From the NCBI RefSeq assembly GCF_006345805.1, contig NC_043015.1:23126001-23190000 (forward strand): a stretch of 64,000 bases of DNA, given 5' to 3'. Position numbers and translations under genes: made by a program. The notes beneath the pieces were generated by a model. That model saw only the letters and a program-made list of their open reading frames with translations, did no database searches and was not told where the DNA came from. The DNA comes from Octopus sinensis (lineage: Eukaryota). Within the stretch, counting starts at the first letter, position 1. Each line of letters opens with the position of its first letter. Positions 14,821 through 51,989 of the stretch are shown piece after piece.

Positions 14821-15939
14821 TTATTGTATGGAAAGTGTTCTGCGTAGGATGTGTGCAGTGCCCAGTATTGCAATTTTCTGTATGTTATATGTGTTTGTAA
14901 GTCCTGGTGTTTTTGTTATGTATTTGTCTGAATATTTTTTTATCGTGCCTAATGCACCTACTATGATAGGAATTGTTTCCGTTTTTAGATTCCATATTCC
15001 GGTTACCTCTATTTCCAGGTCTTTGTATTTTGAGAGTTTCTCCATTTCTTTTAGAGACACGTTGTCATCTGCCGGTATTGATACATCTATTAGAAAGCAT
15101 TTTTTTTCTTTATGATCTCTGACAACTATATCTGGTCTGTTGGCCTTAATTTCTCTATCTGTGTGTATTGGCATATCCCAGAGTATGGTTGCTTTCTCGT
15201 TTTCTGTGACCTTTTCTGGTGTGTGCCTATACCATCTTTTTTCTGTTGTTATTCCATAATGTTGGCATAGCTTCCAATGTATGAAGGTTTCAACTCTGTC
15301 ATGTCTGTGAATATATTCCTTCTTAGCCAGGACTGGGCAGCTAGAGATAATATGATTTATTGTTTCTTGTCCATCTCCACATATTCTGCAGTTATTGGTT
15401 AAATTTCTTTTCATTACATGTTTTTGGTAATTTCTGGTGGGGAGGCTTTGGTCTTGTGCTGCAATTAAAAATCCCTCTGTCTCTGCTTTGAGTCCTGAGC
15501 TTCTCAACCATTGCTGGTATTTTTCTTTGTCTATTTCTTTTGCATTTAGTTTAATCCAGTATTTGCCATGTAGGGGGTTTTCTTGCCATCGTTTTATCAT
15601 GGTTCGATGCTGTTCTATTTTTAATTTGGATTTCGTTTGTTTTATAGCTTTTGTTGTTTCTTCATCTTCTTCTTCTTGTTCTTCATATTTATTAGGTGGT
15701 ATGATTTCTTGTTTGTATTTGTCAGCTTCCTTAAATACTGAGAACAGTTTTTTGTTTTGCTCGTATTTTGCCGTTATTTGTATCAGTTTTCCTTCCTTCT
15801 GAAGTAGATATTTTTGCAGTCCTATGGTGGTTATTTTATAGTAGTTTTCCAGCTTTATAAGGCCTCTACCACCTTCTATACGTTGTATATATAGCCTTTC
15901 TATGTCAGATTTTGGGTGATGCATCCTAGATCCTGTCAT
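14821..15939 (-). pseudogene. Dong/R4 ORF C-terminal part (post-RT region, CCHC knuckle, REL endonuclease), 372 aa open
   Basis: ORF track translation carries the PD-(D/E)xK-type REL signature. Confidence 0.88.
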
Positions 15940-16160
15940 TATTTTTCTTGTTTTCCTATCTATTTTGGTCAGCTCATTTAGTGTCCAGTTTAGGATATTG
16001 TAGCTGTAACTTATAACTGGGACAGCTAAAGTGTTAATACATATTATCTTGTTTTTAGCATTGGGCTCTCTTTTTAGTATTGATCTAACTCGTGTATACT
16101 ATTCTTTTTTACTTTTCTCTTTCATTTGTGTGTGTTGTGTCTTATCTAGTTCATGGATTC

Positions 16161-16886
16161 CTAAGTATTTGTAAGTTTGGTTTGGTCTAATTCTTTTATT
16201 TCATTGGTTTTATTTAGTGTGATGTTGCTACTCTTAACTAGTTTTCCTCTTTTCATGGTTACTTTGGGGCATTTTTCTAATCCAAATTTCATATCTATTT
16301 CTTTGGTAAATCCATGAACCGTCTTTAATAGTGTTTCCAGCTGTTTGTCATTTGCAGCGTATAGTTTTAGGTCATGGCTGATCGTTTTGCCGTAACATTT
16401 ATATCCACATCCAGTTCTATTTAGCATATCAGATAGAGGTGACAGTGCCAAGCAGAAAAGGAGTGGAGAGAGCGTGTCTCTCTGGAATAATCCTCTGCTA
16501 ATGGGGATGTCTTTGGTTTTCATGAGTCCCTCTTTTGTTTGGAGCTGTAGCACTGTTTGCCATGTATTCATAAAGTGCTCAATGAATTTTATAATTGCTG
16601 GTGCTACTTTTTTAATGGCTAGTGTTTCGAGGGTCCATCTGTGGGGGATGCGATGAAACGCCTTTTTGTAATCGATCCAGGCAATACTGAGGCCGTTCTT
16701 CTTTCTGTGGCCGTCTTCAGTTACGGCTTTATTAATCATTAGTTGATCTTGCTTCAGCTTTTCTTTGATCTCAGGTAAATCTTTTTCTGTGATGGTATAT
16801 TTGCGGAGTATTTTTGTTTTCTTTTTGTTGCTCAGTAGCGTTGATTTTCTACTGATTTCATTAAGAATCGACATATCTTTTCTCAT
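16161..16886 (-). pseudogene. Dong/R4 reverse transcriptase remnant lacking the YMDD motif
   Basis: KTISHDLKLYA where the family normally reads ISHLLYMDDLKLYA; frame broken at 16161. Confidence 0.85.
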
Positions 16887-26357: not shown

Positions 26358-27062
26358 GCTATTTTCATCATCCTTGTGACTATGGCGAAAGAATGTATCT
26401 GGTGGACGCGTCTGAAAGGATTGGAGACAAACACTTTCTTCTCTGGTCAATCTCTCATCAATTTCTTCAAGTACCACTTGAAAAGGAAAGTGAGAGTAGA
26501 GAGGCAAGTTTTGTCTAGCGAATCTTTTAAAAAAAGATGGGTGAATGTAGCAAGGATGGCTCGTATGAATGACGAAGCCACCTTGAGCATAATCCTATGA
26601 ACCCAGAAATTGAAAACAGAGGGTTACCCACTTGCAAACAAATGTGGTAACATATAACAATATTGACCAAGGTTACCGTGGTCTTTTTCGTAGGCTTTTC
26701 TTCCCACGGATAAACCTTACTTGCTTTCCCCTTTACACCATATATCATAACACTGTGATACACGATCCCTATTGATCGTTTTTTTTCCTCTTCCCCTTTT
26801 TTTCCCATTTTTTCTTCTTTTTTCATTTCTCTTTTCTTTTGTTCCTTTTCCTTTTTCTTTTTTCTTTTTCTTTTTTTCTTTTTTATTTCATTTATTTATT
26901 TTTTTTGTTCTTCTCGTCCCTTTTACGATCCCTCTTGATCGAAAACCTACGCCACCCCCTTTGTTTTATTTTTGTTTTTTGTTTTTTTCATCCCCCAAAA
27001 GAAAAGCACTACCTTCTAACTTGTCCCATCTGTGTGCAGCCCTGTGTGGCCAATAAAGAAAC
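26358..27062 (+). mobile_element. Tx1/L1-clade LINE, short 5'-truncated copy (ORF2 C-terminus + 3' UTR)
   Basis: 8 mismatches in ~243 coding bp versus 30484-30726; ends ctgtgtgcagccctgtgtggccAATAAAgaaac then (TATC)n. Confidence 0.92.
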
Positions 27063-27112
27063 TTATCTATCTATCCCTCTATCCATCCATCCATCCATCC
27101 ATCCATCTATCC

Positions 27113-27188
<76 letters not shown>

Positions 27189-27343
27189 ATCCCTCTATCT
27201 ATCTTTTCATCTATCTGTCTATCTATTCATCTATCTATATATCCATCTATCTGGCTATCTATATTTCTATCTATCTATCCCTCTATCTATCTTTCCATCC
27301 ATCTGTCTATCTATCTATCCAGCTATCTATCTATCTATATCTC

Positions 27344-27385
<42 letters not shown>
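27063..27385. repeat. Degenerate (TCTA)n microsatellite between the two Tx1 copies
   Basis: Direct inspection. Confidence 0.95.
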
Positions 27386-27387
<2 letters not shown>

Positions 27388-30300
27388 AGCCATAAGCGAG
27401 ACCAGACTCCACAATCCGCGGGCCCTAAAGACCATGTTTGGCGGACAGTTCAACATTTATTTTTCCCCCTGTCTGCCGAGAATGGGCGGTAGTGGCACCG
27501 CGGTACTTTTTCACAAGAGTCTGGATCTCAATGTAAGGACAATATTCGTAGACCCGGAGGGTAGACTGGTCGTCCTGGATGTCGACGGCAGCAATGGGTG
27601 CGCTTTTCGGCTCGTATCAGTTTACGCACCGCCCTTAACAGGTCGGGCGGATTTCTTTCAACGTCTAGAAGTTTTCTTGGGAACGTCTCGTCCTTTACTC
27701 TTAGTGGGGGATTGGAATGCTACCTTGGACACGCATGTAGACTACGTGGGTAGAGATAGGAATAGACGGGGATGCAAATGCCTCAGAGACCTGCTCAGAC
27801 GCTTTCAACTGTCTGACAGGTTTCGACTAGACCACCCGAATGCGCCAACGTGGACATGGAGCAACCGCATCGGGTCGTCGAGATCGTATCTAGATAGGAT
27901 ACTGTGTAGGACAGTAGATAGAGATAGCATAGGATGTCCACAATTCCACATAGTCAGCTACACGGATCACAAACTTGTGACATGTACGCTAGACTTAGGT
28001 AAGACACTTAGGCAGGGTCCCGGATACTGGAAACTAAACGCGTCTTTCCCATCGAGACAAGTTTTCAGAGACCGGATTAGCACACTAGTAAAGAGGCTTT
28101 GACGGGAGCCATCATCAACAACAAATGGTGGTTTGCCCTCAAGAGAGCAGTAAAAGCAGAAGCGATTAGGTACAGCAAAGCACTAGCCATAGATAGAAAT
28201 AGAGTAGAGGGTGAGCTAGTTAAGAAGCTAGAAGAGGCAATTAGAAGCGGCATCGCATCCGACGTTTTGGCGGCGAGGTTGGCCCTCGACCAACACTTCA
28301 ACGCCAAACACGAAGGATGTGCTGTCAGAGCTAGGATGCGTGCTCTAAGGAACGAAGGTGTTGGAGCCGCGAGAGAGGCCCGGGTGGCAGAGGCGCAACA
28401 GGGCAACAAAGCCACCATTCGGTCACTGGTAGATGAACAGGGGCGCGAATTGCTCGAGCCAAGTAAAATGTGTGAGGCCTTTCAGCAGCATTTTGCCCGA
28501 CTGTTCGGAACGAGTGGAGGGCAAGAACGTAGGTGGACTTCAGTGCCTACCTACATAGCCTACCACGACTCTCGACAAGAAAGGCAGGGTGCTGCGAAGG
28601 TGCCATCACGGCGGCGGAAGTGCGGGAAGCGATGGCAGAATGCTCGAGGGACAAATCACCGGGTTTGGATGGTCTACCCTACGAGCTTTACAATTGTATG
28701 CCAGACTTGTTTGGAGATCTCTTGGCGGCGGTGTACTGCAACTGGCAGCAAAACGGGAGCATTCCTGTTTTGTGAGCCGAGGAGCCGTAACACTGCTGAA
28801 GAAAGATCTAAACAAGGGAAATGTAATAGATAACTTTAGGCCCATCACTCTGCTTAATGCAGACTTGAAAATTTTGGCCAAGGTGCTAGCCAAGAGGTTG
28901 GCGCTTGTCATCGAGAAACTGGTCGACAAGGCGCAAACATGCGCCGTGCCAGGCCGGACCATCCATGACAACCTCCATCTGATGCGCTACATCATAGACA
29001 GGGTAGTTAACGAACCTGGCATGGGTGGGGCCCTGATCAACTTGGATCAATCAAAAGCCTTTGATAGGGTAGACCATCGATACTTGGAGGCAGTCCTGAG
29101 AGCGGCTGGTTTCGGTCCCGTCTTCCGCGGCTGGATAGCTGCCTTGTACAGAGGCATCCGTTCGGTAATTCGCGTAAATGGACATCTATCGAGACCTTTC
29201 GACATTGCACGTTCGGTCCGTCAGGGATGCCCCCTCTCGGCGCTTCTATACGTATTGACTCTTGAGCCACTACTGCGGAAGCTGGCGACTCTAAGGGGCA
29301 TCCCGCGAGAATTGGGATGCGGGACGAGCGTGTCTGCATACGCGGACGACGTCACCGTCATAGTGTCTAGCCACGAGCACATCGAGCTGGTCGGCGAGAC
29401 ACTGAAAAACTACGAAGCGGTGACAGGAGCGAAAGTCAACCGGGAAAAGTCAGTGGGCTTGCGACTAGGCACCTGGAGAAGCAAGCCCATGCCGTCCACC
29501 AGCGCCTCCGTCGTGGGACGCTGGACCGACGGCCCGGTTGAGTTGCTCGGGGTCTGGTTTGGTCCGGACCTCCAAGTGGAGAAGAACTGGAACGAGATAA
29601 CGAGTAGGGTGGTCACTCTCGCCCGGCAATGGGCCGAGAGGAAACTGTCCCTAAAAGGTCGAGCGGAGGTGGCGAACACGTACATCGCGTCCGTCATCTA
29701 CTACCGCCTGACCGTCGTACCTTGTCCCGACCCTACCATCACCAAACTACAACGCATCCTCTTTCGCTTCTTGTGGAAAGGATGCGTCCCGATGGTCAGG
29801 CGATCCATTTGCTGTCAACACCCGTTAAAAGGAGGGCTGGGCATGCCGTGGTTGATGATGCGCAGACACGCGCTGAGACTGCGACATCTCTGGCTCTATG
29901 TAGACGACGGTGAACAGGTGTGGTCGCCGTTTGTGAGGCACGCTTTCCCGCAGCTCGTCTCCATGACCGAACTGCAGTCGTGGATCAAAAAGAGGCCGAG
30001 GAAGGGCGAATGGCACCGCGAGTGTCGCGTTGCTCTCAAGCAACTCTGCCGTCCTGGGTCGACCTTAAGTGACTTCAACACAACCAAAGCATTCTATAGG
30101 GGTTTAGTGGAGGGGAGGTACGACGACGAGCTCGGGGCGAACCTGGACGTCGACGAGAGGAGTACCTGACCCGCCTGTTCGGGACGACTTTCGGGCCAGG
30201 GCCCATGGACAACTTCCAGAGATCCCTGGCCTGGCAGTGCTACCGAGAAGCGCTACCCGTTCGGGATAAGCTCTACAGACACGGCTCGAGAAACACGGGG

Positions 30301-31030
30301 CCGACCTGCCCGAGATGCGGTCAGAGCGACGAAACCGTTCTGCACGCACTCGTTCAGTGTCCAACAATTTCCGACCTGTGGGCTTATGTCGAACAACTGC
30401 TGTCACGTGTGGGACGAGTCGGTTTATCAGCTGAGTCTATCGTCAATATTGTCACGCCTCCTTCCTTCAAACGGGAAGGAAGAGCTATTTTCATCATCCT
30501 TGTGGCTATGGCGAAAGAATGCATCTGGTGGACGCGTCTGAAAGGATTGGAGACAAACACTTTCCTCTCTGGTCAATCTCTCATCAACTTCTTCAAGTAC
30601 CACTTGAAAAGGAAAGTGAGAGTAGAGAGGCAAGTTTTGTCTAGCGAATGTTTTAAAAAAAGATGGGTGAATGTAGCAAGAATGGCACGTATGAATGACG
30701 AAGCCACCTTGAGCATAGTCCTATGAACCCAGAAATCGAAAACAGAGAGTTGCTTATTTGCAAAAAAAAAAAAAAAAAAAAAAGAAATATAAAATGTGAC
30801 TTCATTGACCGAGGTTACCGTGGTCTTTTCCGTAGGCTTTTCTTTCCACGGGTAAACCTCACCTGTCCTCCCCTTAACACTTCATATTGACATTTCTGTG
30901 ATAACGATCCCTATTGATCAATTTTTTTTCCTCTCCCCCCTTTTTTTTTTTTTTTTTTTAACCCCCCCTTTCTTTTGTCCTCTTTCTCTCCTTTTACGAT
31001 CCCTTTTGATCGAAACTCCCCCTTCCTTTT

Positions 31031-31066
<36 letters not shown>

Positions 31067-31137
31067 CTTCAAAAGAAAAGCTCTACCTTGTAATTTGTTT
31101 CTATCTGTGTGCAGCCCTGTGTGGCTAATAAAGAAAC
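27383..31137 (+). mobile_element. Tx1/L1-clade LINE, 5'-truncated within the APE domain (EN-RT-CCHC ORF2 with frameshifts + 3' UTR)
   Basis: APE motifs LAISET, VYAP, GDWN, LDRI, TDH, GPGYWKLN; RT motifs FRPITLLNADLKILAKVLAKRL, LDQSKAFDRV, RQGCPLS, YADD; CPRCGQSDETVLHALVQC; frameshifts near 28100, 28530, 28770 and 30165; ends AATAAAgaaac then (TATC)n. Confidence 0.95.
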
Positions 31138-34100
31138 ATATCTATCTATCTATCTATCTATCTATACACACATGGATTCATATTTATACACATATACCTG
31201 TTGTATTATAGTAGGTATCTGCAATGCTTTTTTAATATTGCGGACATGTGTATTCTGAACGAATTAGAGAAGCTAATCTCCTTTGAAATATTTAATTGTT
31301 CCTCACATTTCGACTCCAACGCTCAGTCAGTTTCGAGTACGTCATGGCACCTGCTTCATCTTTCAAACATCATTTTGAAAATCAAATGAAATTAAACAAT
31401 CGTTAGAAAGAAGTTATTTTGATAACTAAATACAAATGAATATTTAATCGCTGGCTTCAACTCAATGATTCATAAGAGATTTTATGATTATAAAAACTCG
31501 CAATACTTCATCGAGTTTCCGCTTGCTCTTATATCATAGTCCATCAGACTTTGGTATCATTAAACAAATTGTTGTTCAAATTTCTGCATATTTAAAACCG
31601 TTACAATTCCATTATCACGCGTGATGATCTGACACTCCAGGAAAATGAAAATATAATTTATCGCCCTCTCCTACTCTTTCAACTTGCTTTCATTCTTTCT
31701 CTTACTTTTGTCTAATATTCGAATAGAGAATGTTAAGGTAATGCTTCAATATTTTCTGATTGTCATTTAATGACATCAGTCATCACACGCGCGCGCGCGC
31801 ACACACACACGTGCGTGCGCGCGCAAACTTTCACGCATAGTGAATGAGGAGGTGGCTGATAAATTCTTTAAATGTTAATGAATTGAAAGCAAAGAATTTA
31901 TTCTGGCTCTTTCTTCATCTTTCACTTATGAAACCACTTACTGCCCTCAGAACGACTCGAAAGTTTGGTAGACAATAATATATATACATATATGTACATA
32001 TATATACACATATATATATATACATACATACATACATACATATATGTATGTATGTGTGTGTATTTATGTATGTATGTATGTATGTATCTATAGACATACG
32101 CACCAGGACGCATGTATAAATCCAACATTTTATTAATATATTGCAGTAACGTAAGTCTCTGCCGTATGCCTCACATTCTTCGTGTAAAACACAATGATGC
32201 TTCAATTAATGTAGCTCTACCATCCTAGAAATAATACCTTCGAGCACTACATTGTGCTCGAGGCTGGGCTCACCTAGAAAACTTATTAGATAGAGTATAA
32301 TTTTTGAAAAGGGAATATAACAATTTATGTACTAACTCAAGAATTTAGATCTCACTATTTTATTCATCTCATTCAATGTTATAAACTTTTCTCTCTTCCG
32401 TGATCACTGGTTTCACACATGCACAAACCTGAAACACATAAACGCACAAACACAAAAACACACAATCTTTTACACATATATATTCATACATATTTATATC
32501 CTTTAAATATGTATGTATGTGTGTGTGTGTGTGCATGCGTGAATATATGTCTGAAAGAGTGTGTGTATGCGTTTGTGCATGCCTTTTATATCTTTCTTTT
32601 GAATATATATATATATATATATGCATATACGCAGGATTGTGTCTGTTAATGTGTTGATGTGTGCGTGTGAGGGGGATTTATTTAACATATGTCCTAATTG
32701 CTACTGTAGTTGTCAAATATCAAACACCTACATTAAGGCTTGACCATGTTTAAATTTAATGAATGCGTTTTGGGGTTGTCAAATTTGATTTTTGCTTTCT
32801 TTTATTTATATATTTTGACAACACAGACACACACACACACACATATATATATATGTATGTGTGTGTGTGTGTGTGTAAGTATGTATGTCTATAAACACAT
32901 ATTCTCTAACCGGGTTGTGGCCGCAACTCTTGAACTGAAAGTTGTGTCAGGGGACCAATTTGCACTTTTGGTCTATATAGGCTCAACACACTAATTTGTT
33001 GCAATTGGCCAAAATATTCATGAGATGAATTTTGGACCAATTCCTGAGCCCTGTACCGTGATTATTTAAGTGTTCTGTGGGAATTGGATTAAAAGTTCTA
33101 TCACGATGCACGTCACATATTTTAAGCGACAAATTCTGTATGAGTTCTGGAGCCTCTTCTCCATAAATTGGTTCGACAGTTTTTTTACGAATTAGAGCGT
33201 TGAGAGATGTCATTGAGAAAAGTTTGCATCCTGCCGTCCAGAGTAAAAACGGCATACAAGGAGCCATATTACCAGTGATGATATCAGATGAATTACCAGA
33301 ATGTTTGAAGAACAAATTGTTCCGAAAACAATCCGGAAGAATTTTTATTTTTTTATTGCTTCTGAAACACTGTACAACTTTACAAAGGAATAATGTCTAG
33401 ATATTATTTTAAACATATTTTCTTACATTACTTATACAATCGAACACGTGTCCTTAGAAATATCTTTAAACACTTCCTTTATTTTGACTAAAAACACAAC
33501 CTTGATGTTGCAGGCAGAACACCCGCTGGTTTTCACAATCGCACCTCAAAAGTAGTAATCTATATGACTACAAGCGGGAGAATTAAGAGGTCGGAAATTG
33601 GAGTTGGTGAAGTCATAGACATTCATCGTCAATCACTTCTAAATTTTTCTGATGTATGACAAGGAGCCGAATCGTGCAGACACACATGATTTATAGTAGT
33701 ATCATTTCTAGCCATAGATTGACCACATTCTCCAGTAGCTTAAGGGAGCCGCCTCAATTGAACGTAAAGCCTTGCTTGAAACTCTTGAGTCAGTTGCGGT
33801 GTGTGGACTAGTTAGAAGTTCTGCTATGTCAGGTCTTGCTGGCCACAGTTTCTTACCGTTCCAGCCACCCAAGTGACGTCTTACAGCTTTTTGCATTTTT
33901 CACAGTGCCTTGAGCAGCACACATGATGTTGGTAGTTTGATACTCGGCTCAAATCGTTATGATACAGGTAAATTTTTTTCAATATTCGGAAGGCTTCCAG
34001 GCCGCCATGTCGTCTGACGTTCTTTCAACTACTATCTCCATGTTAATGCTTTCCAACACCGTTAACTTTTCACCAGTGCATAAATAAAAAAACAAAAAAA

Positions 34101-34996: not shown

Positions 34997-35408
34997 CTCT
35001 TTTACTCTTTTACTTGTTTCAGTCATTTGACTGCGGCCATGCTGGAGCACCGCCTTTAGTCGAGCAACAGGACCCCGGGACTTATTCTCTTTGTAAGCCC
35101 AGTACTTATTCTATCGGTCTCTTTTTGCCGAACCGCTAAGTGACGGGGACTAAACACACCAGCATCGGTTATGAAGCAATGCTAGGGGAACAAACACAGA
35201 CACACAAACACACACACATACATATATATATATATACATATATACGACAGGCTTCTCTCAGTTTCCGTCTACCAAATCCACTCACAAGGCATTGGTCGGC
35301 CCGGGGCTATAGCAGAAGACACTTGCCTAAGATGCTACGCAGTGGGACTGAACCCGGAACCATGTGGTTTGTTAGCATGCTACTTACCACACAGCCACTC
35401 CTGCGCCT
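34997..35408 (-). mobile_element. Full-length tRNA-derived SINE family A with internal (TA/TG)n
   Basis: Minus strand aggcgcaggagtggctgtgtggtaagtagcatgct...ggttccgggttcagtccc head, body, internal microsatellite and tail ending agtaaaagag. Confidence 0.9.
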
Positions 35409-43600: not shown

Positions 43601-46057
43601 TCATAAAGAGCAAGATGAGTTAGAATAAAGAAATAAAGATTGTCAAAATATAATAATGGCGCAAAATGAGCAGTAGTAAAATTTTACCATATACCTTACT
43701 GCAAATTTCATACTAGCGGTACAATGAATATTTGTAAGACATTACAAAAATTCTCCACCCGAGATTCTTTAGTCGTATAAATGCACTCATTAGGGTGCAT
43801 GCAACGACAGTTCAGCCAACACATTAACTTAACCACATATTTACAAACAGGAAGAACTATCTTAACTCAAAAACAGTTATGCCCCTTTGTTAGTCACCGG
43901 CATGAACTGTCTTAAGAAATTTAATGAATCTCAAAGAAATAGCTTAAGTACATACATACCTGCATATATATATACACATATGTGTGTAAATTCTAGTATA
44001 GATCGGAAAGACAAAAAATAGATGGTTACGTAGCACGGTTTTTACTTGCATCCGTTAAACTTATGTGGTTCAACCAGTGTCAGTCAACAAAAGAAAAAAT
44101 ACTAATCGTTAGCATAAATGGGATTAAGGTGAAACGAACGTAATTGTGTGTCGTTGTGATTTATTGGTTCCATTATTAGTCGATTTGTAGTTTGTGTTTT
44201 ATTAAATGTTTAAAGTTTATTTGGAAATGGTAAAGACATCCTAGAGAATCTGAGAGAATGTGGTTAGATATAATATGATAATCTATCATGGCTAAATCAT
44301 TTTGTATATTTACCATTTGCGCCTAAAAATAGTGTAGATTTTGACTAAAGAAACAAATGGTTAACTGGGGGGAACTGTTAAAGTTTTCTGTGAAAATGAC
44401 GGATAACATGTGAAGTGAAAAGAATGATAAAAAATGTAAAAGAGCGGGATGTGCTTGCACATGGAATCTGTTTAATGATACAATGTAAAACAGACGGTAC
44501 GAAAGACTGTTGGAGATAATTGCAGGCTTGGCTGGATTGCCTTTGCATTCGATCGATATTGCAACATATTAAATGCGTTAATAAGGTTAATGTATCTAAC
44601 AGACGAATGTTTAACACTGACTAGATTTGAAGAGAAAAATATTAAAACTACCTTATATATTATCAGAGCAAACATTGTGTGCTAGACCATTAACTGTGAT
44701 TATGAATACATGAAACTGAAGACGTAATATGCTAAATTATACAAAATAAATAAAACTAATTATACAAACTATATTTTTTCCTTCATTTAAAAAGATTTTC
44801 TTTGAAAAAATAGAGCAATGATTAAATCTGTATGGAACTGGTAAATTTTTGGAGCAGACAAAAAGCAAACAAAATTCTTTGGATTGAAACATGCAAAGTC
44901 ATGGCGCCATTTGTGTTAATTTGATTTTAAAGAAGAGGTAATTCAGTTACTAGCCCGTTATGTAAACTATGGCGGGTTGATAAATGAAACTGATAAATTC
45001 AATATGAGAATAACTATATTCATAAAATGAAAAATTGTTGCCGATATGGTGGAAGGATAGACGAGTTAAAACTATTTAAAGATCAACAAATAACTTACAC
45101 ACTAAATCTTCTCAGTCAAGCAAAAGTTTTCATTTTTATATTAGTGTACATTTATAACTAAAAAGTGTGCATTCCTTTCAATATGTAAGTAGAAAAGTTA
45201 TAAGCGAATACGTCAGTGATAAAAGAGTGTTTGGGAAGTTAGTGTTGCATCTAGCAATTGCCAACGATCGGAAGATAAATAGATCTTTGACTGTTAACAA
45301 TGAGTTCAATATGATTTATATAATATTTGAATGGGTACATGTAAGGGCAATTGTTAATCATATTTAGATAATTCACCAAGATTGTTTTAATGAAACGAAA
45401 CTTCAAACTACGTTCACATCCCAGAAAGTAAGGATATGACAAAGAGATCAAAATGTTAAGAATGGAACAAAAACACCCCATAATGTAATTTATTTTAATT
45501 GTCAGTGGTTGAGGAAATACTTGGTTCCATTAGTACATTTTCTAGGACACATTTTGTTTATGTGACAACTTAGTGTCAATCAAATTCAGTTACAGGCAAA
45601 TATATACTTTCCAAATATAACAATCGTATAAGATATAAAACTGTACTTTCGATGTTTTAGAAAATTATTTAATCGGTTTGACACGTGAAAGTCCATGGGC
45701 TCTCATTTACGCAGCATTCAGGTAATGATTAAAAAATATAGAACGTAAATCGATATAATATCGTCTATTCCTCTGCTCCAGTTAAACGTGTAACTGAAAA
45801 TTATATCTACTTACATATTGAAAGGAATGCACACTATGGTTAAGAGCTTATATGATGACAACGAGAATTCGGGTTTACTGTTCGACAGACATGCAAGTTC
45901 ACACACATGTAAAGATAGATAAATAGATATGTAAATAGATAGGTAAAGGGATGGATTGATAGTTACATATCCATGGATGGATTGATAGGTATATACATAG
46001 ACAGATAGATGGAGAGAGAGATAAATAGGTAGTGTCCAGAAAAACGTGAAAAAATTC

Positions 46058-46353
46058 TTTAGTTGAAGGAATCGACCCCGGACTAATTATATCGATCTCT
46101 TTTGACGAACCACTAAGTTTCGTGTACGTAAACACACCAGCATTGGTTGTCAAGCGATGGCAGGTTGACAAATATACACACACATACATGAATATATGCA
46201 TATATATAAACACGACAGGCTTCTTTCAGTTTCTGTCTACCAAATCCACTCACAAGGCTTTGGTCGGCCCGAGGCTATAGTAGAAGACACTTGTCCAAGT
46301 TGCCACACAGTGGGACTGAATCCGTAACCATGTGCCTGGGGAGCAAGCTTCTT
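46058..46353 (-). mobile_element. SINE family A, 3' portion, interrupted within the tRNA head
   Basis: Aligns with 35070-35385 up to gggagcaagcttctt, where similarity stops abruptly. Confidence 0.9.
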
Positions 46354-48438
46354 TATTCCATCAAATTAGCCATAAAAGCTTTACATAGATGGATGCAAAT
46401 ACGGGCTGGACAACAACACAAATGAAATGAATGACGAGCAAAATAATGATATTGATGAGGGAAGCAGACGACGCCCGCAGATCGATGCTTCCCGAAAATA
46501 TTGTTCTTTTTTTTTCTATTTTAGAAAAACAATTTGAGGTTATATGTGTTCAATGGGACACAAGGCGCTATCAAATGAGGCACTAAGTCTCTTATCTATT
46601 TTAAAACTCGAGACATTAAAGCCCGTTAACTCCATACCCCAATAGGCGCACTGCCTCATTCAAGCACCTGGACGGTATCAAGTTGGGACACTTTAGCATA
46701 AAGTTAAATATATCCTCGGGGAAGGATTTCAATATCCTGTACAACTTGGTTTCCCTTATGACCACTGCAGCAACCTGCGGAGGCCAATCAGAGTCCTCAT
46801 TGCAGGCCTCTTTTGTCACCTTCTTTAAAGGTGGAAGAGGATTACAAATTACTCGTCTATCACAAAGGAAGGGGCCACAGTTTCTTCCGTCGACGGCACA
46901 ATTACCACCGACGGTGTTTAGGGATATGCCAAATATGTGTTAGTAATCGCCGGCAATGCCGCGTTTTACTTCTCTTGTATTTTCTTTTGCCACGAGAGTG
47001 TGGAGTTCTTCCGTTTTGTCCGGAACATTTTCTTTCCCTCTCGCAGCCGTAGTATTCCTCGGTGAGCAATCATTGCCACCCACCTTCTTCCTCTTTCGGC
47101 TCTTTTCCGTCGAGGAGGTCTCCACCTTCTCGACCATCTCCCGCTCTCCCTCCGAATGAGTAGGGGGCTCTTCCTCAACTAGCAGCTCCAGAACCCTTCT
47201 CTATCTACTCGGGTTTCATTCCAAGTGACAACCCGCATAAAATTATAACAGCTGAGATACATGACTTCTGTTTAGAATATAATCAAAATACAATTTTACA
47301 TTATATACATTTTTTTCCTGTCTGTCAGAAAGAGATAAAGCACATTTTTACATCTCTATTTGCCAAGCATTTGTTTCAAATTAAAACAGTAATAGTTCTT
47401 GAAGCAATAACAGCAGGCAGTCGTTGCCATGCTAGATAAAGCAATTTAGCAAATCTCTCATTTTATCTGAAACAACTGATCGTGTTCTTCAATTGGACGA
47501 GTATTTCTATTAGAATTAAATAATAGAAGTACACATTTGATTAGGTATAGCCAACACTTTATGGAAGCTCTTTTATGCACTAACAAGCAGGATCTCCTGA
47601 GGGGTGTCAAGTAGCAACCACACCGTTGCATACTTAGCACCCCTGGAAATAAATTTTATAGTTGGCAGATACTCAGCCAGAAAACGGCAATGGTGTCGGG
47701 CGTCTTTGAATAAGTCCTATGCACCACCGTCCTCTCTTCTAAGTCTTTCACCCACTCATTTGGTGGGACAATCTCCAACTCCAACCCAGTGTTCGTTTTT
47801 CCTGCCATGTTTTGGAAGAAGAGTTCACACAAAAAAAGGTTCAAATAGTCCAAAAAATAAAACACAAAAAAGGGAAAGAAGGAAGAAGGAAGAAGGAAAG
47901 AAAGCAGTCCAAAACACAGCAACTTCAACCTTCCGAATAACTGGTACTTCCGGCCAACTAGTATAGCAACAGGAAAACAGCAACGGGAACAAAGCTTCAC
48001 AAATTTCCCCAATAAATTGATACAAAAATTGGTAAAAAAAATTTCACAATATTTGGAGGTGGAATATACCCGCAAAATACTGCATACAATCTTCCGGCCA
48101 CCGGTACTCCAGGCCAACCAAATAGTAGCAGGAACACAGCAACAGGAACACAAAACCAAAGTTCACATTTTCGTAGGTGGAATACCCCCTAAAAAACAAC
48201 TTAGTTCTCACCGCTAAGTGAGATACTTATGCCCAAATGCAGGCAGATAAATGCGCGGAATTCAGTGGCGATTTCTTGCTTGAAAAGAAAAAATATACAC
48301 TAAACAGCAAACTCCCACTGAATCCAAAAAAACAAAAGTCTTACCTTGCAGTTCGGCTTCACTTAGTTCGCCAGGCTGCAAACCAGGGTCACCACTTCTT
48401 TCAGTGCAAAGAAAAACACCTACAACAACGCATGCGCA
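46354..48438 (-). mobile_element. ORF1-only Tx1-type (HAL1-like) element, copy A, degraded
   Basis: Colinear with copy B: ERTVVHRTYSK, LAEYLPTIKFISRGAKYATVWLLLDTP, acidic/basic linker, WPPQVAAVV; 3' end ...gaAATAAAG; centre replaced by a 285-bp foreign segment. Confidence 0.8.
47234..47518. repeat. 285-bp segment duplicated at 50626-50909
   Basis: cgcataaa(a/g)ttataacagctgagatacatg...gagtatttctattagaatta present in direct orientation at both sites, roughly 85% identical by eye. Confidence 0.9.
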
Positions 48439-48452
48439 GAAGCAAGCTTCTT

Positions 48453-50493
48453 TATTTCATTTAATTTGCCACAAGGGCAGCACACAGGGAGAAGCTTGCG
48501 GGCTGGACACAGACATTAATGGGATGAATGATAATGATGCAAGGATGATAAGGATGAGAGAAGACTAAAAGCGCCCGCCGACTTTCGCTTCTCTAAAACA
48601 TTGTTCTTTTTCTCCTTTTTTTCTTTTCTTTTATAAAAAACACAATGAGGCGATAAACCTCTTACATAGTTCAGAATTCTTTTTTTGTTTTTCTTTTTGA
48701 AGCAAATGAGGCTATAAACCTCGTACATAGTTCAACTATTGGAAAAAAATCACACACACGAGGCAAAATGCCTCTCATTTTTTTTACATTTTGTAGACTC
48801 TTTTTGAGTCCAAACGTCCAATGCTTCAAGTTTTCCGTCTCACCAGGCTCCTTGCTTCATCGAAGTATCTATTCGGTTCCTAGCCGGACCACTTGGCCAT
48901 ATATCTATAGGAGTCCGCTGGAAGGAATTCGTTATCCTGCACAGATCGTTATCCCATAAGACCTCCGCAGCCACCTGCGAAGGCCACTCAAGGTCCTCCG
49001 AGCAGGACAGAAGCCCTTCCCACCGGCCCTTCCTTTCAAGTTTTTTTATTTCATTCTGCAAAGTCCCTCCCTTGTGGAAGAGGACCACAAATTCCTCCTC
49101 CTGTGGCACACCCACCGAAGGAGAATCGGGACACGCCGGCAACGTTTCACAACCCGCCGGCGATGTCCCGTTTTTCTTTTTTATTTTCTTTTTCCCTTGG
49201 GCCGCGGGAGGGTGGTGATCCTTTGCTGTGTCCAGGAGGTCCTCCTTTTGTCCCGCAGCCCTCGGGTCCGTCGGTGGGCAACCATTGTTGCACACCTATC
49301 GCTTTCGTTTTTTTCGAGGAGGTGGAAACCTCCTCGTCGTCCTCCTCCTTCTCTTCCTACATTGAGGGAGCAGGGACTGATTCCTCTATTAACTGCTCCA
49401 GGATCCTATTTTGGTCGTTGGGGCAATTTTTCTTGATGTGGCCGATCTCCAGGCACAAGTGACAGTTGGGCGGGGGCGTCCCTCGAGCATCACCGGATAC
49501 CTAGACCCGGCCATCCTCAAAAAATCTGGGAAAACCAGACTTTCGGCTGATTGGGTCCATAGTGTCAAAACAGCATTTGACCCCTCCCAATCAACCGCAG
49601 CCAAAATTTTCACATTGAGCATCTTGGTACTGCTACCACCCAGACCTCGGTCGATAGAGTCCTTTATCCACTCGGGCTCAATTCCGGGTGGCAAACCGCA
49701 GACCCAAGCCCTCATTAACTTATTCCCACAATAACTGGGAAGAAACATAATTTCCTTGCCCTCCAGGAGCCGGCTTGCAAATTCGGAAGCTTTTTTGGGG
49801 GGGAGTCAAATAGCAACCAGACTGTTGCATATTTGACTCCCCGTGAAATAAATTGAATGGTTGGCATGTACTCTGCCAGCTCCTTCAGAATTGTGGCTTT
49901 CGGGAAGACGGTTAAGGTATCTAGCGACTTTGAATAAGTCCTCAACACCACCGTCTTCCTTTCGAGCTCTTTTAGCCATGTTTAATAATTTCACACTCAT
50001 AATTCCTTTGCCATTTGTTTTTTTAAAAGTTCAAATACAGTTCACAATACGGTTTCAAATAAAGAAAGATACACAAAAAAAAGAAGGAAAGACACAACAG
50101 AAGGGAAGAAAAAATAAAAATAACACTTCAATAAAGTTCTTTCTTTTTTTTAATAAATGATAGCTGTGAAAAAGAGTTCAAATGCTGGCAAAGAAATTAA
50201 TTTTCGGCCGAAAGGTACTCCAGGCCAATAATCCACAGAGAATTAAACAATTTCTCACAATTATGTGAGAAAACACACACGTCTCCACCGCAAGGCAGAC
50301 AAAAAGCTTCGAATCCAGTAAGGACTCCTTACTTGTTCAAAAAAATAAAACTTACAGGCAACAAATCCTACTGGACTCAAAGATCCAAAAGTGTTACCTT
50401 ACGGTAGAACGTCTTTCAATTCAACTTTCGTCCGCTGCACACCAGCGTGACGACTTCAAGGGCACAAAGAAGACAACTGAACAGCCGGAACCG
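48453..50493 (-). mobile_element. ORF1-only Tx1-type (HAL1-like) element, copy B
   Basis: Frameshifted ORF1 ~49980-48840 with RRM-like N-terminus and CX2CX4HX4C knuckle (PNCHLCLEIGHIKKNCP, ~49470-49420); ~390-bp 3' UTR with no EN/RT; ends ctgtgtgctgcccttgtggc...AATAAAG. Confidence 0.85.
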
Positions 50494-50531
50494 GAAGCAA
50501 ACTTCTTACCATACTGCCACACCTGTGCCTA
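50494..50531 (-). mobile_element. 5' tip of the split SINE family A
   Basis: Minus strand taggcacaggtgtggcagtatggtaagaagtttgcttc matches the head start of the intact copy at 35370-35408. Confidence 0.85.
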
Positions 50532-50625
50532 TAAGTAGAACGTTTTGATTAGTGTATAAAATAGCTTACATAAATTGTTTGCTTTACCTGATCAGATGTG
50601 TACTTCCATGACTTTAATAAATACT

Positions 50626-50909
50626 CGCATAAAGTTATAACAGCTGAGATACATGGCTTTTGTATAGAATATAATCAAAATACAAATTTATACCTAGGCA
50701 TTATTTTCTTGTCTGTAAGAAAGATATAAAGCACATTTTTACATCTCTATTTGCCAAGCATGTGTTTCAAATTAAAATAGTAACAGTTCTTGAAGCAATT
50801 GTAGCAGACAGTCGTTGCCATGCTGGATAAAGCAATTTAGCAAATCAATCGCTTTATCCGAAACACCTGATCGTGTTCTTCTATTGGACGAGTATTTCTA
50901 TTAGAATTA
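50626..50909. repeat. Paralog of 47234-47518
   Basis: Direct alignment. Confidence 0.9.
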
Positions 50910-51989
50910 TAAAATTAATTTAACACTCTCACAGTTAGCATATTTGTGAATTGACTGACAGAAGCTGGAATGTACTTTCGCACAGAGTACAGCTAAACAA
51001 GTAACTTTTAATGATCTAAAAAATATATGCAGTGCCAAAATGATCAATCATGCGTTTAGTATAAAGTTTTCCATATACAGTAAAATTAAAGTACCACTTT
51101 AATAGGATTATGAGTCGGATGCGAATGATCATATTGACAACTGGATGCTATTTCGAGCTGGCTAAATGACCAAGTACAAGCACTATCGCCGGCATGATAT
51201 ATATGAGATAAATTCATTAAGGAGTTTGAAACAAATATCGATCATTTTTCCTATCTCATTTCAAATGTTTTACAAAATATGAGTTAAATAATCTCCAATT
51301 GCACTGATTAACATTTCAAACTCATAAAAGTTATGTCGTTATTAATATAATTGCAAGCAGGAATTTTCTATGAATTTCGTATGGTAAGATTCAACGGAGA
51401 TGTTATCATGCAAAACTTTTAATTTACGGCTATCTCCATACATATATCATAATCATTAATAAAAAATATTCTTTTTATTTACACATATCATACGTATCAT
51501 ATATATCTTGAAGCACATATTCCGAAGAGTATCTGCTTCAAATTAATATTAATAAAATATTTTTCTTCAAGAGATTTCACTGTTGTTGTTGTTGTTGGAG
51601 GTGGTGGTGGTGGTTTTGGATTCTGGCATGGTTTTGCTAGCGCTCATGGTATTTGTGGTGGCGGTAGATTTGGTGGTTTGGCGATGGTGCCGTGGTTTGT
51701 TGTTCTGAGGGTTGTAGTTAAGATACAATGCCTGTTGTTTTACATTGCAACTGTATCCATGTAAAACTTTTTCAAGATACATAACTTATATTTGATCCCT
51801 TCATTACTTTCATGTATACTCGTATGCACTCAAACACATCTACAGGCACACTTAACAACATATATGTGGGTGTATACCTAACTTCATGCATGAATATCTA
51901 TGCTACTATGCAATTCGCATCTCCGCATATACAGTCATATAACTCTACATGTGGTTGTGTATACACACATTAGTGTCTCGCAACACGAA

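Follow-up and report, generated by a model that had tools for sequence, protein, structure and literature searches.

A gag-only retroposon family of Octopus sinensis that probably uses the head of a SINE as its landing pad

The 64,000-nt stretch of Octopus sinensis DNA analysed here (NC_043015.1, positions 23,126,001 to 23,190,000; hereafter the window) contains a short interspersed element (SINE) split by two related elements of about 2 kb, E1 and E2, which lie in tandem and are bordered by three copies of a 14-bp motif, the 14-mer. Together with a third copy found at another O. sinensis locus, designated L001, E1 and E2 probably represent a site-specific mobile element for which the SINE serves as a landing pad. 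The best explanation of the data as a whole, and a likely one, is a non-autonomous family of ~2-kb retroposons that insert through target-primed reverse transcription (TPRT) into one site of the SINE head, with the enzymes supplied in trans by a long interspersed element (LINE). The components of the locus, and the related intact SINE, are as follows:

46058-46339, minus strand: 3' part of the SINE, with the B-box-like motif, body and tail; aligns with the intact SINE after joining of the flanks
46340-46353, minus strand: 14-mer copy c (AAGAAGCTTGCTCC in sense), bordering E1 at its 3' junction
46354-48438 (2085 bp), minus strand: E1, a decayed gag-only retroposon with both ends complete, colinear with E2 and the L001 copy
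48439-48452, minus strand: 14-mer copy b, sense AAGAAGCTTGCTTC, separating E2 from E1
48453-50493 (2041 bp), minus strand: E2, a gag-only retroposon with both ends complete
50494-50507, minus strand: 14-mer copy a (AAGAAGTTTGCTTC in sense), bordering E2 at its 5' junction; the C that comes next matches the next SINE base
50508-50531, minus strand: SINE 5' tip with the A-box-like motif, by sequence and by alignment to the intact SINE
35098-35408, minus strand: intact SINE of the same family, with the empty site at 35372-35385

The minus strand is the sense strand of the SINE, E1 and E2, all of which share one orientation. Read along it from the side of the SINE tip, the locus comprises the tip (50530 to 50508), ending in ...GGT, the 14-mer AAGAAGTTTGCTTC (50507-50494), E2 (50493-48453), ending in ...GAAATA, the 14-mer AAGAAGCTTGCTTC (48452-48439), E1 (48438-46354), ending in ...GGAATA, the 14-mer AAGAAGCTTGCTCC (46353-46340), and finally the SINE remainder (46339-46058), which begins with CCAGGCACATGG. 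The SINE is interrupted directly after GGT. Its flanks, when joined, align without a break across the junction with the intact SINE at 35098-35408 (79% identity, 314 nt), in which the unoccupied homologous site reads AAGTAGCATGCTAA (35385-35372). A first-pass annotation of the window had described the split SINE, the three 14-mers, the two elements and the empty site, and its positions proved correct to the base.

With up to two mismatches allowed, the 14-mer is found at no more than three places in the 64-kb window, each exactly at a junction; shuffled sequences gave a mean of 0.51 matches, and three matches were reached in 2 of 100 shuffles. The three 14-mers at the interrupted SINE differ by only 1-2 bases. 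The duplication is 14 bp long at E1 and 14-15 bp at E2 and L001, i.e., above 10 bp and slightly variable. In 85 kb of octopus DNA there are three sites composed of the A-box-like motif plus the target, two of which are occupied, one of these twice, and the sole empty site has a diverged right half. The origin of the SINE head from a tRNA, assumed in the first-pass annotation, was not confirmed: ARAGORN detected no tRNA gene, Rfam gave no tRNA match at E <= 10, and the A-box-like TGGCTGTGTGG (10/11) and B-box-like GGTTCAGTCCC (9/11), separated by 32 nt, a tRNA-like spacing, were recognised by eye only. Octopus SINEs have been reported to be tRNA-derived (Ohshima and Okada 1994, as cited in PMC4758252).

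The only close protein relative among 5.8 billion sequences is the 281-aa product of O. sinensis LOC115225585 (P0001), 71% identical to the conceptual translation of E2; further searches of this set gave nothing new. Its locus, L001 (20.8 kb of CM016886.1), was found via the protein, and the flanks were not used. The 5' junction at L001 consists of the SINE tip ending in ...GGCTGTGTGGT, followed by AAGTAGCTTGCTTC, C and TGTGCATGCGTTG...; in longer form it reads ...CATTAT, AGGCTGAGGCATGGCTGTGTGGT, AAGTAGCTTGCTTC, C, TGTGCATGCGTTG..., with the full SINE 5' tip present. The element begins at the same SINE-head nucleotide and in the same orientation as the window copies; the motif TGYGCATGCGTTG that starts E1 also opens the L001 copy, and the starts of E1, E2 and the L001 copy lie at most 3 nt apart in the alignment of their 5' untranslated regions (UTRs). 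Across the rest of the 20.8 kb no homology of the L001 flanks to the window flanks was found, which makes the two loci independent. The earlier proposal of insertion directed to a single target, which lies immediately 3' of the A-box-like motif, is supported by this independently found copy. Moreover, the 14-mer tracks the host SINE: it contains AAGTAG in L001, as does the intact SINE of the window, and AAGAAG in each of the three copies bordering E1 and E2, as expected for a target-derived duplication.

All three retrievable copies, representing three lineages at only two loci, share the target position; for comparison, target specificity has been defined by the same sequence type in >20% of flanks (PMC4494074). 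Since SINEs constitute ~11.6% of the octopus genome (O. vulgaris; PMC13282606), the chance of a random insertion starting within one base of a given position in a ~310-bp SINE can be roughly put at <1e-3. The common junction could also arise with no real site specificity, if the SINE tip and 14-mer at L001 were a 5' transduction from a master copy sitting in a SINE. The L001 element, which is cut off after ~1.48 kb, fits such an origin in offering the 5' junction only, with no SINE remainder within 10 kb downstream, and the loci examined number only two. It is nevertheless improbable, for the window SINE resumes in register after E1, E1 is preceded by the 14-mer alone, with no SINE tip, the 14-mer differs with the host SINE copy, and the junction is common to three lineages with a synonymous divergence (dS) of ~1. 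A later deletion accounts for the SINE remainder lost from beside the 3'-truncated L001 element.

E1 and E2, described in the first-pass annotation as homologous ~2-kb elements of the same orientation, are colinear from the first to the last base (68% identity in a pairwise global alignment; in shuffled controls essentially nothing aligned) and end at the identical base. Their same-orientation, head-to-tail order with the 14-mer exactly between the copies would also be produced by one insertion followed by an in situ tandem duplication through unequal exchange at the 14-mers and by neutral decay, and the SINE is old (79% identity to another copy), which makes a long decay conceivable. A three-way comparison, restricted to the 1008 columns present in E1, E2 and L001, renders such a history extremely unlikely. 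Identity is 56% for E1-E2, 61% for E2-L001 and 68% for E1-L001, i.e., E1 is closer to L001 than to E2, and E1-E2, the most distant pair, was the closest one in 0 of 1000 bootstraps. The 14-mers differ by 1-2 bases only, the elements by 32-44%. The in-frame ratio of nonsynonymous to synonymous divergence (dN/dS) is 0.19 for E2-L001 (261 codons, dS 1.07), 0.30 for E1-L001 and 0.40 for E1-E2 (85 codons), while controls shifted by one or two bases gave 0.85-1.56, except for one E1-E2 control (0.46). The coding divergence shows purifying selection, and the low in-frame values relative to the shifted controls indicate that most of it arose during replication under selection, before the copies landed. 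E1 and E2 are not in situ duplicates; two separate insertions, which the first-pass annotation had favoured over a recent tandem duplication, are supported.

Either order of insertion yields the observed structure. The heavier decay of E1, with its nested 368-bp repeat, a ~246-bp deletion and ~90 bp replaced, is suggestive of E1 having inserted first and E2 having re-used the left 14-mer copy, the SINE tip being kept upstream. LINE reverse transcriptases (RTs) are known to jump between templates, and both elements might instead have arrived in a single TPRT event, in which the RT jumped from the 5' end of E1 RNA to a read-through E2 RNA ending in the 14-mer, giving one concatenated cDNA that would still be site-specific. 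The order tip, 14-mer, E2, 14-mer, E1, 14-mer, SINE remainder is also predicted in this case if the E2 RNA carried 14 nt of the downstream target, and an AATAAA located at the junction makes read-through tails plausible. Little probability is attached to this course of events: it requires a read-through of exactly 14 nt and co-expression of two diverged families, and the far more advanced decay of E1 suggests different ages.

Both elements, taken here as successive insertions, have the layout of a 5' UTR of ~520-640 nt, with the first ~250 nt conserved, one broken reading frame, and a 3' UTR of ~260-390 nt ending in ...GGCWAATTNNATGRAATA; a near-terminal block, TCATTCATYYCATT...TGTCCAGCCCG, sits ~65 nt from the 3' end. 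The following features were delimited within them:

47231-47598 (368 bp), no strand assigned: unrelated repeat nested in E1, where it replaces ~90 bp of the open reading frame (ORF); absent from E2 and the L001 copy
49185-49978, minus strand: gag-like ORF remnant of E2, with 3 frameshifts and several stops; CCHC knuckle at ~49423-49464
48840-49295, minus strand: C-terminal portion of the E2 ORF, whose protein sequence is conserved in E1

The ORF codes for an N-terminal region, predicted to be RRM-like, a CCHC knuckle, a K/E-rich linker, and a C-terminal region of ~100 aa. The knuckle of E2 is PPNCHLCLEIGHIKKNCP (Pfam zf-CCHC, E 0.013, below threshold), and Pfam does not find zf-CCHC in P0001. 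The C-terminal region, conserved between E1 and E2, has no Pfam domain and no homologue in the databases; a PDB sequence search with the gag-like protein gave no match, and AlphaFold2 run on P0001 alone reached a pLDDT of 38.7, too low for the model to be of use. In E1 the ORF is preserved as remnants with frameshifts and stops, and the ~246-bp deletion spans the CCHC region. No long terminal repeats (LTRs) or terminal inverted repeats (TIRs) were found at the termini in a repeat search over 46000-51000, and neither element contains an RT or APE/endonuclease ORF or Pfam domain, nor a DDE transposase. E1 and E2 are therefore non-autonomous; they are not endonuclease-bearing LINEs but ~2-kb elements with a gag-like ORF only, which require a partner. 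With the gag-like ORF under purifying selection, ORF2 absent, and an end-to-end 2-kb architecture common to the diverged E1 and E2, they are gag-only non-autonomous retroposons and resemble a "half-LINE" in architecture.

Several other motifs recur in the UTRs. A splice-donor-like (C/T)(A/G)TAAGGTA(A/G) is kept in all three copies ~100 nt into the 5' UTR (E2, 50380-50400; E1, 48330-48350; L001, 9585-9600), and further along all three keep TTGTCTGCCT and a hairpin CTCAC-N6-GTGAG; these could be parts of an internal promoter or a retained intron. In the 3' UTR, a ~60-bp unit with GAGGC-N6-CCTC is present three times in E2 (48616-48790) and once in E1 (46572-46604).

LOC115225585 (L001 10001-10846) is annotated as a host protein, but it corresponds to the retroposon gag-like ORF. 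Its stop falls in an A-run, beyond which homology to the E2 ORF goes on in another frame, so that a frameshift has probably cut the annotated protein short. HMMER run over 1.84 billion representatives gave 47 hits including P0001 itself, i.e., 46 remote relatives, 22-36% identical except for a fragment in P0015 (64% over 45 aa). Six of the ten remote relatives looked up come from octopods (O. sinensis, O. bimaculoides, O. vulgaris and Argonauta hians); several of the ten have CCHC knuckles, none has an RT, and the octopod ones pass or nearly pass the zf-CCHC threshold. P0015 is O. sinensis XP_029639579.1, a gene model that joins a 45-aa N-terminal E-type gag fragment (64% identical to P0001) with an integrase core. 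Adjacent transposons have probably been annotated here as one chimeric gene, and the fragment reveals a fourth E-family copy. Look-ups of the exact products of three window ORFs found nothing on record, and no hits came from motif scans over contigs of metagenomes, prokaryote genomes and viruses, as expected for sets containing no octopus DNA.

A candidate for the partner is present in the window itself, as a LINE family whose 3' end is shared with E2:

26358-27060, plus strand: LINEa, a 3' fragment of the LINEb family, followed by ~330 bp of (TATC)n and then LINEb
27385-31135, plus strand: LINEb, 5'-truncated, with APE, RT and zf-RVT (Pfam), ending in ...GTGGCTAATAAAGAAAC plus (ATCT)n; candidate partner family
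48464-48493, minus strand: 3'-terminal block of E2 shared, by alignment, with the LINE 3' ends at 27046 and 31121

LINEa, ~330 bp of imperfect (TATC)n, LINEb and (ATCT)7 form a head-to-tail stack (26358-31160), and the family either carries a (TATC)n tail or targets the (TATC)n microsatellite. This LINEa-(TATC)n-LINEb-(ATCT)n stack is the same phenomenon as that of E2, 14-mer, E1 and 14-mer. The nearest solved structure to the LINEb RT is human L1 ORF2p (E 2e-32, vs 1e-14 for R2), which would place it nearer to L1 ORF2p than to R2, a match that does not separate L1 from Tx1. A 3' tail common to a LINE and a non-autonomous passenger is a classical mark of such pairs. The LINE family terminates in ...CTGTGTGCAGCCCTGTGTGGCYAATAAAGAAAC, and the ~31 nt of E2 that directly precede the 14-mer can be aligned to the extreme 3' end of LINEa and LINEb (LINE, TTCTATCTGTGTGCAGCCCTGTGTGGCTAAT; E2, TTCTCCCTGTGTGCTGCCCT-TGTGGCAAAT). 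The local score of the E2 tail is 19-20, compared with 6.2 +/- 1.4 and a maximum of 18 for 20000 random 45-mers of the window (P < 5e-5); the E1 tail scores 12-14 (P 0.005-0.0005). In tblastx, E and the LINE ORF2 gave non-colinear noise only, with no link at the protein level. Beyond the shared block the LINE reads AAAGAAAC plus (TATC)n, and E has 10 extra bases followed by AAAGAAGC and by the SINE 14-mer, TTGCTTC. In both E1 and E2 an AATAAA spans the boundary between element and 14-mer, and it is also present at the LINE end.

Given the anatomy of the locus, the independence of the copies, their common site and common tail, we infer TPRT, a partner LINE, an annealing step and an order of the two events. 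The family would integrate by TPRT in a single orientation and at a single SINE-head position, with a nick in the bottom strand at GGT^AAG, immediately 3' of the A-box-like motif, and one in the top strand 14-15 nt downstream, so that AAGWAGCTTGCTTC(C) becomes duplicated. Two successive events, by two long-separated lineages, would have taken place, the second re-using one of the two 14-mers left by the first and thereby bringing their number to three. The enzymes would be supplied in trans by a LINE, for which the L1-like family of the window (APE, RT, zf-RVT) is the best lead because of the last ~31 nt shared with E. Cleavage of polymerase (Pol) II transcripts 10-30 nt past AATAAA would leave target-derived sequence at their 3' end, as should follow from the position of AATAAA across the element/14-mer junction, and this tail might pair with the nicked bottom strand (5'-GAAGCAAGCTTCTT-3'OH) and set the start of the cDNA, as described for R1Bm. 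The aim could be set either by the endonuclease of a dedicated LINE sublineage or by the annealing of the tail. A bolder version, possible though on balance doubtful, has a long-lived gag-only lineage of cephalopods in which the 14-15 bp pol III SINE-head site is "remembered" in the read-through 3' tail and is not read by an endonuclease; the element would have been re-aimed when the (TATC)n tail of its partner was swapped for the SINE-head sequence. If true, the target specificity of a retroposon would here have changed under RNA guidance, and a SINE would for the first time be seen as a dedicated safe harbour.

Several points weigh against the proposed TPRT into the SINE head. Only three copies at two loci were examined, and the one at L001 lacks its 3' part and the SINE remainder, which leaves two 3' junctions, both at one locus. 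The E1-E2 dN/dS is based on 85 codons only, and a low value (0.46) was also obtained for one of its shifted-frame controls. At ~31 nt the shared tail is short, it is rich in TG, and for E1 the match is weaker; a proposed terminal hairpin, a possible 4-bp stem with one compensatory change, was discarded, its folding energies being equal to those of shuffles. As many as 7 nt of the 14-mer can be aligned to the terminal AAAGAAAC of the LINE, the first 7 nt, AAGAAGC, resembling the LINE's terminal AAGAAAC; part of the duplication may accordingly represent microhomology between element and target, with a true stagger of 7-15 nt. Finally, the LINE copies of the window sit at (TATC)n and not at SINE heads, and no SINE specificity is seen in them.

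Among known systems, LINEs of the Tx1 clade are targeted to transposons, e.g., Tx1L to the Tx1D piggyBac, Tx1-Mar to Mariner-N4_AMi and Tx1-9_AMi to Harbinger, with others in LTR elements, and the LINE's preference for its target is found again in the non-autonomous passengers, SINEU (PMC4494074). The E family is alike in that a non-LTR retroposon lands at a specific position of another repeated mobile element; it differs in its target, the pol III head of a SINE, and, having no RT, it is not assignable to a clade by RT. Of the overall interpretation in the first-pass annotation, the successive site-directed insertions were thus retained, whereas a Tx1 LINE with a SINE-reading endonuclease is no more than possible. 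The 28S rDNA-specific R1Bm, an APE-type LINE, likewise combines a precise site, a 14-bp target duplication and CCHC knuckles in ORF1; R1 differs in being autonomous and in having a multicopy gene of the host as its target, where E is gag-only and targets a SINE. Downstream target sequence in the R1Bm RNA is reported to be needed for accurate initiation (PMC7265360, citing Anzai 2005), and for E read-through and annealing are suggested solely by the AATAAA at the junction. HAL1 ("half-L1") elements, internally deleted non-autonomous LINEs (Bao and Jurka 2010, as cited in PMC4494074), also keep ORF1 under selection, lack ORF2 and depend on a LINE in trans; unlike E, they are not site-specific, and the derivation of E from the window LINE is seen for the last ~31 nt only. 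The stack LINEa-(TATC)n-LINEb-(ATCT)n is of the same head-to-tail kind as in the microsatellite LINEs Kibi, Koshi and the crocodilian (TTCC)n group (PMC4494074); E differs from a LINE of the microsatellite type in having SINE-head sequence where the LINE has (TATC)n.

Dada elements, DDE transposons with 6-7 bp target-site duplications (TSDs), and Dewa, a Tx1-clade LINE targeting the tRNA-Leu spacer (PMC3706591), resemble E in homing to tRNA-type sequences and, in the case of Dada, in tandem insertions at one site. Dada has no TIRs and inserts into small-RNA genes, including those for tRNAs, and two different target-specific families of it were found in tandem at the identical site in U1 genes, split by the TSD (PMC3706591). 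E1 and E2 might by this analogy be non-autonomous, target-specific DNA transposons or, alternatively, have spread between SINEs by ectopic gene conversion, to both of which very little weight is given. Dada differs in its transposase and short TSD, the duplication here being 14-15 bp with no DDE transposase found, and the ORF is gag-like with a CCHC knuckle and the 3' end common to a LINE; Dewa does not insert into a SINE head, its site being the spacer that separates genuine tRNA-Leu genes. Identity between the SINE tips beside the window copies and that beside the L001 copy is only ~76% (as read from sequence), which argues that the flanks were not co-converted. For the retroposon family preferred here, the distinctive traits are the SINE pol III head as the target and a gag-only architecture maintained across lineages with dS ~1; the tail may be what carries its specificity. 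In the literature, searched without Repbase Reports, no SINE-head-specific retroposon was found for octopus or elsewhere, and an earlier description is possible.

Target-specific retroposons are natural models for programmable, harmless DNA insertion. Those known so far insert into rDNA, small-RNA genes, telomeres or microsatellites, and in a few cases into DNA or LTR transposons. If the present interpretation is true, the SINE head would be a new and, at the genome share of SINEs given above for O. vulgaris, very abundant class of target, and the system would add a third layer of parasitism, with a gag-only passenger borrowing the enzymes of a LINE and landing in a LINE-dependent SINE. Each landing separates the A-box-like from the B-box-like motif of the SINE, and the promoter should be disabled by it. 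If the aim lies in the co-transcribed tail and not in the endonuclease, the family would offer a simple, testable case of a change in retroposon specificity.

The repeat nested in E1 has a second copy of ~370 bp at 50534-50915, 2 bp away from the 5' end of the interrupted SINE and 89-91% identical to that at 47231-47598. A piece of ~80 nt is inverted between the two (47518-47598 vs 50534-50614), and the window holds no other copies; the repeat may be a MITE-like element or result from local transposition. Elsewhere in the window, an ORF on the minus strand (237-914) has a GIY-YIG-like motif, LYIGQTGRRL...FAEH, recognised by eye, and after it a low-complexity tail rich in proline; Pfam gave nothing for it at E <= 0.001, and the ORF is possibly a remnant of a Penelope-like element. 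A second LINE remnant, unrelated to LINEb and bearing RVT_1 and zf-RVT, lies at 14821-16886 on the minus strand.

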